DNA of 64,000 bases, from the sequence record MN871451.1; one strand, given 5' to 3'. Shown piece by piece: positions 12,654 through 64,000 of the stretch (the first letter of the stretch is position 1; the number at the start of each line of letters is the position of its first letter). Below the pieces are notes generated by a model. That model was not told where the DNA came from. It made no database searches and worked only from the letters and a program-made list of their open reading frames with translations. The position numbers and the translations under genes were made by a program.

Positions 12654-12674
12654 TTATGCAATTTGTTTCATGTA

Positions 12675-12689
12675 TATATCTCAGTTATG
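12675..12689 (+). promoter_or_regulatory. putative early promoter (variant)
   Basis: TATATCTC-AGTT-ATG. Confidence 0.45.
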
Positions 12690-12751: not shown

Positions 12752-13123
12752 ATGAAACTTTATTCTAAAGAAGAATTTCTTAAATTACCTTCCGGGACAC
12801 TTTTTGTATTTGGACCAGCGGATTGGACAGAGGGGCAAATAGAGCCGGGTTATCTAGCTCTAAATGTTAAATACGAATCGCTACGCGATGACTTTGTGTT
12901 TAGACCCTTAATTGACATTGAAGTCAGATCCTCAGAAGAACGAGATGAACTCAATGATTTCATCCTAGGAGAGATGAAAACGTGTGACATTTCCTCCGAT
13001 ATTCCCATGGATCTTTTCGCAACGAGCCGCGATGGCTTATTTGAAAAAGATTCGACCTACCTTGTTCTCAGTAATGAGGAACTGAAAGCAGTTATTGCCT
13101 CGTTACAAACGTTAGTCAAATAA
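12752..13123 (+). CDS. hypothetical phage protein
   Basis: AGGAG RBS; starts MKLYSKEEFLKLPSGT. Confidence 0.75.
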   Translation: MKLYSKEEFLKLPSGTLFVFGPADWTEGQIEPGYLALNVKYESLRDDFVFRPLIDIEVRSSEERDELNDFILGEMKTCDISSDIPMDLFATSRDGLFEKDSTYLVLSNEELKAVIASLQTLVK

Positions 13124-13154
13124 CTAAACCAGTAAAAGAAGAAGGAGAAATACA

Positions 13155-22498: not shown

Positions 22499-22564
22499 AG
22501 AGTATTCAACCTGGTTATGTTCAGTGAAAAAGTCATAAGATTAATCTCCAATCTTTTTCATGTA

Positions 22565-22579
22565 TATATTGCCCGAGTG
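22565..22579 (+). promoter_or_regulatory. putative early promoter
   Basis: TGTA-TATATTGC-CCGA-GTG, followed by a hairpin and the AACTAAACC leader. Confidence 0.65.
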
Positions 22580-26983: not shown

Positions 26984-29221
26984 TTATTCATCTACTAGTA
27001 CGCCTATTCTAATTTCTTTAATGTAGTTATTGTTAACATTATTTGCCATAATGACCAATAACTCTAGTGCATTATCCATTCCGTTTGAAGATCCACGCAT
27101 AGTTACGTAACCGTTAGCGTAAGCCTCAGCGGAAGAGTTTGCTGTGTTAGAAGAAGGCTGGCAAACTAACGTTGTGTCTTGCGGATTCATTGTATTGTCG
27201 ACAGCTGATATTTTATTGTTCGTCAATTCCATGAGCATCGGATTACCGATGTTACCATCCCAGGATGGTAATCTACGAAGAGTCATGCTAAATGAAGTTG
27301 GTCCATTAGCATTTCCTGCAAGGCTATTCTTATTAAAAGTTAAAAATGCGCGGACATCTACAACTCCGTTAACGTATGACGGGATAGGTATTCGCATGAT
27401 AACATCATTTACGCCCGTCGCGATAAACCTTCCGTCGTATCTTAATAAATCGGCTGCCGGGGTAACAAGATACGCCGTAGGGGTAAAATACAAATAACCG
27501 ATTTTATACCCGCGAATTGTATTGTTTTGGAAGAAACCAAATGGGGTTTGTGTTTCTCGATAGAAAGGTTTTTGCGGTTTAAATTTGAGTACATTAAATT
27601 GGGCATTTGAGGTCCTAAAGTAAACGTCGTATATTACGTTGTTCACTTTCAAATCACTGAATATCCCGTACTTACCTGCAATACTGATTCCGTTATCCGA
27701 ATTATTCACCTCGATGTCGCTGAAAATATTCGGTTTACTTGCATCGTTGAAACTGGCATCGGAATAGAAAGTACTCAGTCCGTTCTTCGCGTTATTGACA
27801 TAGAGGCCACGAACAATACAACCTTTTGTATTATTAATTAACACCCCTTCAGAGGACGCTGAGCGACCGAGGTTATTAATCTGAATGTTCGTAAACGTTA
27901 CATCCTCGCAGAGATTCGTCGCTATCCCTGAACCATTTAATGTACCGTCTTTTAATGGTTTATACTGAATCGCCGTATCTACTGTGACATCAGTAGAGTT
28001 TGCAACAAAAACAAGACTATAGAATGTTTTATCTTGGTTAGGATTTAAACAGTACAGGTTATGGATGTTAACGCGGTAGCAAGACGGGGTTTCAGGGATA
28101 GTATCAGAGCCTACGTTAACTATCTCTGTCCACCCTTCGCCATAAATGTTTTTGATCTCTATATCCATTGCGTTGTTTAAGTTTATCCCATAACCACCGT
28201 TCAGGTTACTCCCTGTATAAACAGCAACTAAATATAAATTGGAAATAGAGCAGTTTGTGCACTGCGCCAAGTTTTGATTATCGCGGAGATACTGTTTCTG
28301 TCCAGGGTTAACGAAGGTGTTATCTGCAACATTTCCGCCGACGACTGTTCCGGATCGCCATACCGACATTCCTTTTACACGGTTAGCTTCGCGGGAACTT
28401 CCCATTACAAACCCACCGCGGCCTTTAGCCGATAACAAAGGGTTCTCAAAAATGACCTTACTTCCCATACCTTGTCCAATCATTTTCGTCTTATGGAAAA
28501 AGAAAACCGGGAAAGTAATCCGAAAGGCTACATCGGGAGATGGTACGTTTATAATGCCGCCACCGAATTGATAGGTACCGTACGTGGCCCCTTGGAAGGC
28601 GAAGTAATCGTCAGTAACACCGTCTCCTTTAGCGCCAAAATCATAGACTGAAAAAATACCTTTATCCGGTACTCGTTGCCAGACCCATTGATCGTCGTAT
28701 CTAACATGCGCACCATTGTCGTTTTCTACCGTACTGTTACGAATAGCTTTGAAGTTACCACCCCCTCGGCTGTTCCCTGAATAATAACCCCTCAAAAAAA
28801 TAACCTGTCCTTCAAAGGAGGGTTGAACAGAACTGATCTCTGAAAAGTTATCGACTTGAATTTGAATGTGTTTTAATAACGCGGGAATATAAATAATTTT
28901 CTTAGTTCCGCTTTTACCGATGACCGCATTCGCGCCAATGTTAGTTCGGACGTATTCGTTGACTGATAATTTGTTACTGTCGACATAAACGTAGAAGAGT
29001 TGGTTTTCTACCGTTGCAGCAATCCCCTCCTCCACTGTCTCAAAGGCATGGTCAAAATCAAAAAGATCCCGAACCTGGCTCAATGTGATTTTGTTCGTTG
29101 CCAAAGTACCGCTAGATAACGTCAAACTTAGCGGTAACTCTCCTGCCATATTCCCGCTAGTCAAACTGTTTAATTCACTGATCTTATTCCCGAAGTCACT
29201 CATTACCATTACCTTTCTCAT
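26984..29221 (-). CDS. tailspike / depolymerase (pectate-lyase-like beta-helix)
   Basis: GGGNF..DNG..WQR module; SVYDFGAKGDGVTDDYFAFQ beta-helix start; Asn-rich rungs. The true start may be an in-frame ATG near 29203 (MSDFGNKISELN). Confidence 0.85.
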   Translation of the reverse strand: MRKVMVMSDFGNKISELNSLTSGNMAGELPLSLTLSSGTLATNKITLSQVRDLFDFDHAFETVEEGIAATVENQLFYVYVDSNKLSVNEYVRTNIGANAVIGKSGTKKIIYIPALLKHIQIQVDNFSEISSVQPSFEGQVIFLRGYYSGNSRGGGNFKAIRNSTVENDNGAHVRYDDQWVWQRVPDKGIFSVYDFGAKGDGVTDDYFAFQGATYGTYQFGGGIINVPSPDVAFRITFPVFFFHKTKMIGQGMGSKVIFENPLLSAKGRGGFVMGSSREANRVKGMSVWRSGTVVGGNVADNTFVNPGQKQYLRDNQNLAQCTNCSISNLYLVAVYTGSNLNGGYGINLNNAMDIEIKNIYGEGWTEIVNVGSDTIPETPSCYRVNIHNLYCLNPNQDKTFYSLVFVANSTDVTVDTAIQYKPLKDGTLNGSGIATNLCEDVTFTNIQINNLGRSASSEGVLINNTKGCIVRGLYVNNAKNGLSTFYSDASFNDASKPNIFSDIEVNNSDNGISIAGKYGIFSDLKVNNVIYDVYFRTSNAQFNVLKFKPQKPFYRETQTPFGFFQNNTIRGYKIGYLYFTPTAYLVTPAADLLRYDGRFIATGVNDVIMRIPIPSYVNGVVDVRAFLTFNKNSLAGNANGPTSFSMTLRRLPSWDGNIGNPMLMELTNNKISAVDNTMNPQDTTLVCQPSSNTANSSAEAYANGYVTMRGSSNGMDNALELLVIMANNVNNNYIKEIRIGVLVDE

Positions 29222-32225: not shown

Positions 32226-32507
32226 ATGAAGCGATTTTCACCCAGTACTAATGTTTCCTTCGTATTCTTGTTCATTCTGATCCTGGTTGGTTTCCTGTTC
32301 AAAATTTTTACTGGTATACGCCTCCCGCCTTCAGTGGCGGGGTGCTTTTTACTTGGGGGTCTGATATTGTCATTGATTTTCTCTTTTCTCCTGAAACGAG
32401 AAGGTCAACGTAAATCCCCATCTAGGTACGTTTTCAACTGGTGCTACCTGTACCTGATCATCGCTCTGACCATGATGAGCTGGTCACTCTTATTCGTGAG
32501 GTTATAA
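32226..32507 (+). CDS. three-TM membrane protein (paralog of 31357..31632)
   Basis: Shares the PST..SFV, PS, LSLIF and W.Y pattern. Confidence 0.7.
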   Translation: MKRFSPSTNVSFVFLFILILVGFLFKIFTGIRLPPSVAGCFLLGGLILSLIFSFLLKREGQRKSPSRYVFNWCYLYLIIALTMMSWSLLFVRL

Positions 32508-43308: not shown

Positions 43309-43728
43309 ATGTTTTACTCGCTGACCCTACTTTCCAAAATACTCTCTTTGTTCTCCTGCTTCGCCCTGGCCATTCTTATTATTGCGAAAATCCCGTTATT
43401 AGAGGATGCAGTAATTTACTGGGTGATCACGTTGATCACAATACGCTTACTCTGGCTGGGTTTCCAGTTCTTCTCCTTCCCTGACCTCTCAAGAATAACG
43501 CTGACGCCAGAGAACAAAAGTAAACTTCGCCAAAAAATAGAGAAGCATCTGACTTTCACTGGCGGGATGAACGTTATGCTGCGTTTAATCGTGGCTGTGG
43601 TGCTATTCATTCTGCTCTGCGTTCACCATGAGTACTTATTAGGTATTCTGTCTATCGCTACTTTCTTTGTCCGAATGTTTTTCGAGATTGAAGCGATAAT
43701 CGAAATTGAATCGCTAAAACACGTATAA
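43309..43728 (+). CDS. four-TM membrane protein
   Basis: AAGGA RBS; four hydrophobic segments. Confidence 0.7.
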   Translation: MFYSLTLLSKILSLFSCFALAILIIAKIPLLEDAVIYWVITLITIRLLWLGFQFFSFPDLSRITLTPENKSKLRQKIEKHLTFTGGMNVMLRLIVAVVLFILLCVHHEYLLGILSIATFFVRMFFEIEAIIEIESLKHV

Positions 43729-43766
43729 AAAAGAGAGGGCGTTTGCCCTCTCTTTTTTTGTTTCTT

Positions 43767-44336: not shown

Positions 44337-44375
44337 AAAAACTTCAATAAATCGAAATGCAGTTTTTTTGATGTA

Positions 44376-44390
44376 TATATTGCTAAGGTG
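44376..44390 (+). promoter_or_regulatory. putative early promoter
   Basis: TGTA-TATATTGC-TAAG-GTG, followed by a hairpin and AACTAAACC. Confidence 0.65.
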
Positions 44391-44447
44391 AAATAGGAAA
44401 GGAAAAAGTCTTTTCCAAATAACTAAACCAATAAGAGGTAAAGTAAA

Positions 44448-44606
44448 ATGAAAGAAAGTATACTTTTATTAATTGTCACGCTCATTGCGTTGCTTTGTTT
44501 CGGCGTCTCGTTACCGATGGCCATCCTTTACGGATTCGTCTCTGTGCTCGTCTGGTATATCGTTTCACCGTTCGCTCTGTTAGTCACCGTTACCTATTTA
44601 CCCTAA
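44448..44606 (+). CDS. 52-aa membrane microprotein (not in ORF track)
   Basis: GAGG RBS; MKESILLLIVTLIALLCFGVSLPMAILYGFVSVLVWYIVSPFALLVTVTYLP. Confidence 0.7.
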   Translation: MKESILLLIVTLIALLCFGVSLPMAILYGFVSVLVWYIVSPFALLVTVTYLP

Positions 44607-44621
44607 GAAGGAGAAATCATC

Positions 44622-44792
44622 ATGACTTACTTCATCGCATTAATTCTCACCCTGCTGATCTGCACCTTCTTTGAACTGACTATCATCCCAACACTTCTGG
44701 TAGCTTTCATAGCAGGGGCCGCCGGAGCGTTTTTAGAAGAGCAAACTAACAAAGCCAATTTCAACGCAACCCATTCACCGGAGGCGTTGTAA
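44622..44792 (+). CDS. 56-aa membrane microprotein (not in ORF track)
   Basis: AAGGAG RBS; MTYFIALILTLLICTFFELTIIPTLLVAFIAGAAGAFLEEQTNKANFNATHSPEAL. Confidence 0.75.
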   Translation: MTYFIALILTLLICTFFELTIIPTLLVAFIAGAAGAFLEEQTNKANFNATHSPEAL

Positions 44793-44911
44793 TGAAAACG
44801 TCTTTCGCGGTACTGGGGATTATTTCCTCGGTACTTATTCTTGACCTGGCTTTACTCCCGGCCTGCGTTTTCGCCGTCGCCGTAGGGAGTTACTTAAAAG
44901 CGGTCAAATAG
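44792..44911 (+). CDS. 39-aa membrane microprotein (not in ORF track)
   Basis: GGAGG RBS, TAATG coupling; MKTSFAVLGIISSVLILDLALLPACVFAVAVGSYLKAVK. Confidence 0.7.
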   Translation: MKTSFAVLGIISSVLILDLALLPACVFAVAVGSYLKAVK

Positions 44912-44991: not shown

Positions 44992-45279
44992 ATGGAAAAA
45001 ATCAAAGCGTTCTTCTCTTTCTCTTTCACTGAGAAAACCAAAGCAATCTTTGCTTTCATCACCGACACCCTGATCGTTGCCGCGCTGGCAATCTTCGCCG
45101 CGTTCTGCATGGCCACTGCCATGGAAGTGGCGGCCTACGCTTTTGCGGTCTTGGTTATCTTCAGCTATATTCACGATAGCTACAACAACCTCAAAACCGT
45201 CATTTCTCCTGCCACTGACGGCGAGACTGCGACTGACGCAGGCGAGACCGACGTCTCTGACGCAGCGGTAACCGCTTAA
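44992..45279 (+). CDS. two-TM membrane protein with acidic tail
   Basis: AAGGT RBS; 95 aa. Confidence 0.75.
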   Translation: MEKIKAFFSFSFTEKTKAIFAFITDTLIVAALAIFAAFCMATAMEVAAYAFAVLVIFSYIHDSYNNLKTVISPATDGETATDAGETDVSDAAVTA

Positions 45280-45359
45280 GTCGTCACCTCACCCTTGGCA
45301 CACGAGATAAGAAGGAAACGCCTTACGATAAGCTAAATTAAATTCTCACACTCTCAAAC

Positions 45360-45563
45360 CGTTATAAGACGATATTTCTCGTTACTCACCCGACACCTGT
45401 AATCGAGGCTGTGGCGTTGTACCTACTGACTCTTCCGAAATCGAGGAAAGATCAGAGTTCAGGGACAATAGCAGTAAACCCTCTTACTGGTTCGGTAGTT
45501 GCAGAACAAATGACAGGCTTCGCCGTCTGGTTCTGGACATCGCCGTATGCGACTCTTATAACG
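45360..45563 (+). ncRNA. candidate structured non-coding RNA
   Basis: Closing stem CGTTATAAGA/TCTTATAACG encloses four hairpins within a 335-nt gap lacking a convincing gene; strand assumed from context. Confidence 0.5.
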
Positions 45564-45614
45564 CAAACAACTCTCTCACATCTAAGTCTACTCTTAAAGT
45601 AAAAGGAAAAAATT

Positions 45615-45887
45615 ATGTTAATCTTTACTATCGTAATGGGCTTATTAGCAGCGATAGCGATTATCATTGCAGTTGCCGTTGATCGTAATAAGTTATTCGA
45701 TATCGAAAAACGCAATGAGATCATTAAAGGTTGCTACATCTTCTCTTGCTTGGTCGGTATCTCTGCTCTGTTGGGCTGCGCGTTTGTACCGTATTACGCA
45801 ATCCTCTTTATCTTCGTGCCTGTTTCCGCGTTGGTTTTTAAATACGTAATTGAAGTAGAGTTGGAAATTAATAACTATTGGTGCTAA
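45615..45887 (+). CDS. three-TM membrane protein
   Basis: AAGGA RBS. Confidence 0.7.
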   Translation: MLIFTIVMGLLAAIAIIIAVAVDRNKLFDIEKRNEIIKGCYIFSCLVGISALLGCAFVPYYAILFIFVPVSALVFKYVIEVELEINNYWC

Positions 45888-45960
45888 GTAAAAATTGTCG
45901 TCGTTGAGTTCGTAGTTAAACTTTAAAAACTTTGTTCGCTAAAAATAAGGAGATATAACC

Positions 45961-47418: not shown

Positions 47419-47471
47419 TTCTAAGGGCGTTTTCGCCCTTATTTGTTTTGTTTCATGAAAGGGTATTCAAC

Positions 47472-49168: not shown

Positions 49169-49215
49169 CTATCACAGAGGGGAAAATTCCCCTCTTTTAT
49201 TTTTTTGGAGAATTT

Positions 49216-63959: not shown

Positions 63960-64000
63960 CGAAAATATAAAAAGAGAGGGTTACCCCTCTCTTTTTTTTT

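Follow-up and report, generated by a model that had tools for sequence, protein, structure and literature searches.

The window analysed in our study, a stretch of 64,000 nucleotides, was found to be the last 64 kb of the ~302-kb genome of the Klebsiella jumbo phage KpYy_2_45 (MN871451), of the Siatvirus group (megablast, 100% identity). Ten records matched the window at 98–100% identity (megablast). The genome of Klebsiella phage KpLz-2_45 (genus Siatvirus) was 99.8% identical to the window (megablast) and is referred to below as the twin genome. The window contained an intergenic gap of 335 nt (45280..45614), situated between an upstream gene (44992..45279, + strand) for a small membrane protein of 95 aa and a downstream gene (45615..45887, + strand) for a small membrane protein of 90 aa. 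The upstream protein is an orthologue of gp278 of phage FBKp24, with 44% amino acid identity, and provided the synteny anchor. A gap of this size had been noted, and the limits of the two reading frames (44992–45279 and 45615–45887) bore it out. Across ~50 kb of the annotated twin genome it was the largest gap that is truly non-coding, as the next-largest "gaps", of 285 nt and 199 nt, were found to contain unannotated ORFs. The surroundings consisted of a series of small plus-strand genes, chiefly encoding membrane proteins. The proteins neighbouring the gap were small, and either had no database match or matched only DUF7338, YfjT, and DUF7740. No toxin, reverse transcriptase or defence-related gene was found to adjoin the gap among the annotated neighbours in the window and its relatives.

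The 285-nt "gap" in the RefSeq annotation of the twin genome was occupied by a membrane-protein ORF of 93 aa (32226–32507, + strand). An ORF of 39 aa (44792–44911) was annotated in LPKP23 and MJ359 and not in KpLz-2_45.

At 45360..45563 the 335-nt gap contained a structured element, the length of which was 204 nt in the window and 219 nt in the FBKp24 clade; it was provisionally assigned to the plus strand from its context and a modest G-U excess. In KpSz_1, KpXa_1, KpZh_1, KpZh_LPS_45, and KpLz_1_41, homology broke at the start codon of the downstream gene (45615..45887). Past the break, these five relatives contained a diverged allele encoding a membrane protein of 94 aa, followed by an extra gene of 199 aa (window 45615–45960 versus L003 2335–3237). 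As homology ended at this start codon in five relatives, the element forms the left border of a variable cassette. The element was retained while the downstream gene was exchanged among close relatives.

A sigma-70-like promoter match was found ~1 kb upstream of the element (44352..44381, + strand). The same hexamers and spacing were present in FBKp24, and the match overlapped a recurring promoter-like motif. The next convincing terminator-like hairpin was present at 47422..47441 (+ strand) and was taken as the probable end of the transcription unit. Consensus scans of the window and FBKp24 found no sigma-70-like or terminator-like site bounding the element on either strand. The element would thus be carried in a sense-strand early operon transcript, starting ~1 kb upstream and running into the genes of the small membrane proteins. 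The original prediction had proposed an early phage sRNA. Its non-coding, structured character stood, but the element appears to lie inside an operon, and an sRNA gene is not established because the scans revealed neither a promoter nor a terminator dedicated to it. The papers found on these phages, which deal with genomes, structures, and therapy use, contained no transcript data.

Direct checking confirmed that the nucleotides 45360–45369 are the exact reverse complement of 45554–45563, over 10 nt. A 10-nt repeat is common in this DNA, as inverted pairs of 10 nt or longer, spaced within 300 nt, numbered 104 in the window. Four hairpins had been drawn inside the repeat. All of their base pairs were possible as drawn, and the closing stem and hairpin 4 held, but hairpins 1 and 3 were replaced and hairpin 2 survived in part. 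The four-hairpin drawing had an energy of −45.7 kcal/mol, compared with −63.1 for the minimum free energy (MFE) fold and a mean MFE of −52.0 for shuffled sequences. The pairing probability was ~0 for hairpins 1 and 3, 0.2–0.99 for hairpin 2, and ~1 for the closing stem and hairpin 4; for the last two it stayed near 1 inside a context of 900 nt. Folding energy relative to shuffled controls had been named as a check on the structure, and on this sequence alone it did not set the element apart from chance: the z-score was −2.3 to −2.5 on either strand, and the GC-corrected rank was only 277 among 2552 windows of 204 nt. The single-sequence stability of the element was ordinary for this genome.

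The hexamer CTCACA had been noted in both flanks and was indeed present in both, but the right copy varied in the closest relatives (A/G at 45580), and only the C/U-rich block on the left was conserved. This G-free block of the 5' flank (45343..45355, + strand) includes the left CTCACA and was mostly common to the FBKp24 clade. Another block of the 5' flank (45290..45303, + strand) was identical at 13 of 14 positions between the window and the FBKp24 clade. The same 5-nt word was found directly flanking both ends of the repeat, at 45355–59 and 45564–68. The spacer of ~50 nt between the closing stem and the downstream ribosome-binding site was unstructured and was not conserved between the clades.

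Only six variable sites were found in the gap among ten close genomes and one Logan contig, and the close genomes were therefore little informative on the structure. The flanking gene families, DUF7338-like and YfjT-like, pointed to the next genus, Maaswegvirus, represented by FBKp24 and Centimanus. FBKp24, Centimanus, and four metagenome contigs each contained a homologous gap of 391–393 nt at the same place, behind an orthologue of the upstream gene and within an unchanged gene order. The gap identity between the window and the Maaswegvirus clade was ~55% overall, with several identical blocks, and BLAST missed the gap of the FBKp24 clade. The four contigs were retrieved with a profile of the upstream protein. 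Two of them, L090 and L091, differed at 28 sites of the element and formed a separate sub-lineage within the FBKp24 clade. The known occurrence of the element comprised only ~16 genomes or contigs in two genera.

The 5' flank was ~35 nt longer in the FBKp24 clade and contained a mini-ORF of 11 codons with a Shine-Dalgarno-like sequence (L014 3755–3800, minus strand; also present in L090 and L092). The first six codons of the mini-ORF were nearly conserved and the remainder was variable. It overlapped a hairpin, the arms of which covaried among three sub-lineages. The mini-ORF and its hairpin were absent from the clade of the window. The Moabite-like Serratia phages had two nearby genes in common with the window, but their gap of 283 nt gave no match to the covariance model. 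This gap, the closest comparable one in these phages (L016 3352–3634 in Serratia phage Moabite), contained a strong terminator hairpin and a similar promoter-like motif, and the minus-strand CDS of 40 aa annotated inside it looks doubtful.

When the two clades were folded separately, the same layout, designated P1–P6, was obtained. The tree edit distance between their independent MFE folds was 73, compared with 166 ± 22 for shuffles, and none of 300 shuffles reached 73. A covariance model built from the clade of the window alone scored the other clade at 35–40 bits (E ~1e-8), whereas its best score on 524 kb of unrelated loci was 10.6 bits. A sequence-only model gave 20 bits on the other clade and did not reach the ends of the element. 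The pairs that were doubly changed yet still paired numbered 18 in the window and two relatives and 21 in nine distinct sequences, compared with 0–3 in slid controls, in which the partner column was shifted by 1–3 columns in the model alignments. The share of paired cells was 87–92%, against 38–46% in the slid controls. In a plain MAFFT alignment P5 was fully kept (nine outer pairs), with four double changes. The 28 differing sites within the FBKp24 clade gave five doubly compensated pairs and three exchanges between G-U and Watson-Crick pairs. In the same clade, a block of 4 nt and a block of 6 nt ~100 nt away were found to be swapped with their complementarity kept. The stems varied by compensation, and several unpaired stretches remained identical.

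The comparison comprised, in effect, two deep lineages plus a single sub-lineage, which is short of what a formal test of covariation requires, and model-fitted alignments lean towards structure; within this scope, the conservation of the fold across the clades has strong comparative support. Covariation among homologs from related phages had been suggested as a check on the element, and compensatory changes were seen across the two genera. Selection acts on the fold in both of these genera of Klebsiella jumbo phages, in which the shape was kept rather than the sequence. We consider it very likely that the locus holds a structured nucleic-acid element maintained by selection, as opposed to a protein gene, a mobile element or a product of chance.

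The closing helix P1 was formed by the 5' arm 45360..45369 and the 3' arm 45554..45563 (+ strand), which are the inverted repeat described above, with a pairing probability near 1. In the FBKp24 clade, 4 of 9 pairs of P1 were doubly changed, and the helix contained 12 bp and one bulge. P2 (45369..45382, + strand), a hairpin of 4 bp stacked on P1, was weakly supported, as it showed no compensatory change and was partly broken in relatives. P3 contained five stacked long-range helices. Their 5' strands were located in 45390..45412 (45390–93, 45395–97, 45399–402, 45405–08, and 45409–12; + strand), where they supplanted the former hairpin 1, and their 3' strands in 45471..45495 (45471–74, 45480–83, 45484–87, 45489–91, and 45492–95; + strand), where they supplanted the former hairpin 3. 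Between the clades 7–8 pairs of P3 were doubly changed, and the contig L090 showed a complementary swap of a whole block. These compensated pairs identify the helices that replace hairpins 1 and 3 as conserved pairings.

P4 (45416..45469, + strand), the apical domain, included the former hairpin 2. Its apical loop (45437–45444) was nearly identical in both clades, whereas the register of its lower stem differed between them, and this stem is the least certain part of the structure. P5 (45498..45538, + strand) was a bulged hairpin consisting of the former hairpin 4 and three additional outer pairs. All nine outer pairs of P5 were kept in all nine distinct sequences; four outer pairs were doubly changed, and one U-G pair was invariant. 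P6 (45540..45552, + strand), a hairpin of 4 bp absent from the original prediction, contained a stem that was invariant across the clades, and a C-G pair was changed to U-G at 45543 in one relative. The conserved unpaired motifs included a 6-nt word that was found twice in both clades.

The view that the element resembles no tRNA or recognisable ribozyme core was upheld by the Rfam and ARAGORN searches, which were empty. The search against Rfam 15 (4227 models) gave no match in the whole window at the gathering threshold and none over 45000–45900 at E ≤ 10. The homologue in FBKp24 gave only a noise match of 19 bits against Rfam. ARAGORN found no tRNA or tmRNA gene in the window, and the eight tRNAs of the genome are located elsewhere in the record. 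When the element was compared with retron msr/msd RNAs, inverted repeats were present but no reverse-transcriptase gene was found alongside. When it was compared with type III toxin-antitoxin RNAs (ToxI-like), no family of direct repeats touched the gap, and no toxin-like neighbour was found.

The reading that we favour, tentatively and with a chance somewhat short of even for the statement as a whole, is that of a structured RNA domain of ~205–220 nt carried in the early operon transcript and acting in cis. In a speculative scheme, P1 would close a folded core on which the conserved unpaired motifs are exposed for binding by a factor, which may be a protein or a small ligand. The binding of this factor, or the fold itself, could then govern the neighbouring cistron through its stability, processing, readthrough or translation. 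Alternatively, and still in cis, the closed core might simply block nucleases, Rho or ribosomes. The element was always found ~50 nt upstream of a small-membrane-protein gene, which speaks for a role in cis, and the mini-ORF and covarying hairpin before the element in the FBKp24 clade fit leader-type control. Against this role, the mini-ORF and hairpin were missing in the clade of the window, and the downstream gene was exchanged among close relatives. With regard to riboswitches and other leaders, a conserved structured domain with covarying stems and a conserved unpaired core was present, but no expression platform was visible: in the window and FBKp24 no terminator followed P1, and no pairing hid the ribosome-binding site.

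Comparative genomics of phage and bacterial intergenic regions has yielded orphan structured RNA motifs, for example a set of 224 candidates (PMC5737381). Like these motifs, the element is defined by a conserved secondary structure, covarying stems, and conserved unpaired nucleotides, and it shares with them a narrow distribution, a position upstream of a gene, and the lack of an assigned function. Unlike the motifs catalogued in Rfam, it matched none of the 4227 models, and all its known carriers, the ~16 genomes or contigs counted above, come from the two genera. We regard the element as a new candidate RNA family of the orphan-motif kind with a narrow distribution. It resembles riboswitches and protein-binding mRNA leaders in its length of ~200 nt, in the enclosure of a multi-branch core by P1, in its conserved junction and loop nucleotides, and in its position just upstream of a cistron. 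It differs from riboswitch-type leaders in that it has no recognisable expression platform or ligand class and that its spacer to the gene is not conserved.

The best surviving alternative, possible but doubtful in our judgement, is a stable RNA acting in trans, which comes close to the original prediction. Host RNases would cut the single-stranded C/A-rich flanks, and the core closed by P1 would survive and bind a protein of the host or the phage as a decoy, sponge or scaffold. The compact, closed architecture with its unstructured flanks is consistent with such an RNA, as are the conserved unpaired motifs, including the repeated 6-nt word, and the retention of the element through the change of the downstream cassette. 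Against it, the element has neither a promoter nor a terminator of its own, no evidence of its processing was found, it resembled none of the known families of protein-binding RNAs, and it contained no repeats like those of RNA antitoxins.

The early mRNA of phage T7 contains RNase III processing hairpins between cistrons, and in phage T4 the stable "species 1 and 2" RNAs are cut from the tRNA operon transcript. Like these RNAs, the element would be a structured RNA within a polycistronic early transcript, with no promoter or terminator of its own, and it could be excised or could set the ends of mRNAs. It far exceeds a T7 processing hairpin in size and branching, and its P1 has only 9–13 bp. 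Unlike the RNAs of the T4 tRNA operon, it is located >200 kb from the tRNA cluster in the record. No sequence or model similarity was found.

A bolder version of either proposal, which we hold to be unlikely, would place the element in a new class of regulatory RNAs of phages. Such an RNA might be a sensor of a host metabolite or protein that switches the early membrane-protein genes, or a decoy, released by processing, that sequesters a host RNA-binding or RNA-targeting factor while the phage takes over the cell, and the conserved unpaired motifs would be its binding surface.

Given a selected structured element, the plus strand is probably the functional one. Two mirror models, consensus energies, counts of G-U versus A-C states, and within-clade changes were compared for the two strands; they gave no clear answer, and only the changes in the FBKp24 clade lean towards the plus strand. 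An antisense RNA gene, in which the minus-strand transcript of the region would be the functional molecule, is decidedly unlikely, and much of its case lies in these same tests. The minus-strand mirror model gave 40.4 and 37.2 bits, 26 double changes, and 89.9% paired cells, so that it fitted equally or slightly better, and the consensus energies slightly favoured the minus strand. In the FBKp24 clade the z-scores of the minus strand were more negative. P4 formed a cleaner hairpin on the minus strand, where some of its C-A mismatches would become G-U. Of the changes in the clade of the window, equal shares favoured either strand.

Several G-U states in conserved helices, however, exist only on the plus strand. 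Two U-G pairs of the plus strand were invariant in all nine sequences, and one pair in the FBKp24 clade showed the series G-C, G-U, and A-U on this strand. Two G-U pairs of FBKp24 were Watson-Crick pairs in L090, and P1 showed a change from U-A to U-G, as P6 did from C-G to U-G. The minus strand contained no promoter-like site to the right of the element and no terminator to the left of it in either clade, and the sole terminator-like hairpin of the minus strand sits within the element and would halve it. The plus strand is favoured because the neighbours are all on this strand, the operon promoter match is conserved, and the G-U states belong to it.

A feature acting at the DNA level is very unlikely. 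It would be either the relic of a miniature inverted-repeat element (MITE) or a replication or recombination signal in single-stranded DNA, bordering the variable cassette. Like MITEs, the element has a length of ~200 nt and exact terminal inverted repeats of 10 bp (45360–69 and 45554–63), directly flanked in the window by an identical 5-nt word. The homology break just after the gap in five relatives and the strand-symmetric pairing signal also agree with such a feature. Unlike MITEs, the element occurred only once in the 302-kb genome and occupied an unchanged site in every relative, and its internal helices covary. The flanking 5-nt direct repeat was absent in FBKp24 and its clade. The divergence of the element between the two genera, in which it occupies the same syntenic site, was similar to that of its neighbours.

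No copy was found by BLAST against plasmids and E. coli genomes. The terminal-repeat pattern gave only four chance matches without internal similarity over 185,579 species genomes. In IMG/VR and metagenomes, the DNA patterns found only the two known phages or chance matches in GC-rich contigs, which were negative with the covariance model. The identity as a MITE was rejected, as the element is a single copy at a fixed syntenic site in two genera and no copy was found in the other collections searched. Duplex DNA is not expected to extrude a fold that is nested and multi-branched and has its arms separated by 184 nt, and such a fold further argues against a DNA-level feature.

A leftover spacer without function, structured by chance, is highly improbable; it would agree with the ordinary single-sequence stability and the abundance of 10-nt inverted repeats, but is contradicted by the compensatory changes, the model scores, and the similarity of the folds across clades.

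A functional small protein of 63 aa (45411..45602, + strand) is scarcely conceivable: its frame is open, with a GTG start and a Shine-Dalgarno-like GAGG only 2 nt before it, but in FBKp24 the same frame ended after six codons, and none of the ORFs in that gap was longer than 37 aa. The ORF had no homologue among 5.8 billion proteins, was not called by any gene caller in the annotated relatives, and within the clade contained four non-synonymous changes and one synonymous change (codon positions worked out by hand). It was rejected as a gene, and the non-coding nature that had been proposed for the region held.

Klebsiella jumbo phages are being collected for therapy, yet the majority of their early genes, and every one of their non-coding regions, still lack an explanation. 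In our study, a blank in the annotation turned out to be a selected RNA fold common to two genera, with defined boundaries and helices, and it adds a candidate family missing from the current RNA libraries. If the element is truly a sensor or a decoy, it would reveal a novel means by which a large phage controls or protects its early programme.

Some further features of these genomes were observed outside the window or at a distance from the element. A stretch of 457 nt in the twin genome (NC_061418, L084 41092–41548), located outside the window, was unannotated and contained ORFs of 86 aa and 41 aa, and the 86-aa ORF abutted the adjoining annotated gene. This "gap" was rejected as an RNA candidate, since its ORFs are most likely missed genes. 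A gene for RNA 2'-phosphotransferase (kptA) was annotated in the twin genome at L084 28320–28883, also outside the window and distant from the element. The eight tRNA genes formed a cluster (L086 5526–6310; MN871451 ~55.2–56.0 kb) outside the window and far from the element.

The recurring promoter-like motif consisted of a T-run followed by an alternating T/A word, and five matches to it were found in intergenic gaps, compared with 0.35 expected. Its sites on the plus strand included 44365–44380, 22554–22569, 12664–12679, and 28149–28164, and it was absent from the gap at 45280–45614. In most cases a short hairpin came after the motif, and then a shared leader immediately ahead of the ribosome-binding site (repeat family D1; 44416–44448 and 13117–13149). 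The motif resembles an early promoter cassette belonging to the phage itself. Another repeat family, D2, contained near-identical G+C-rich hairpins between A-runs and T-runs (43727–43758, 49174–49203, and 63969–63998), which look like two-way intrinsic terminators.
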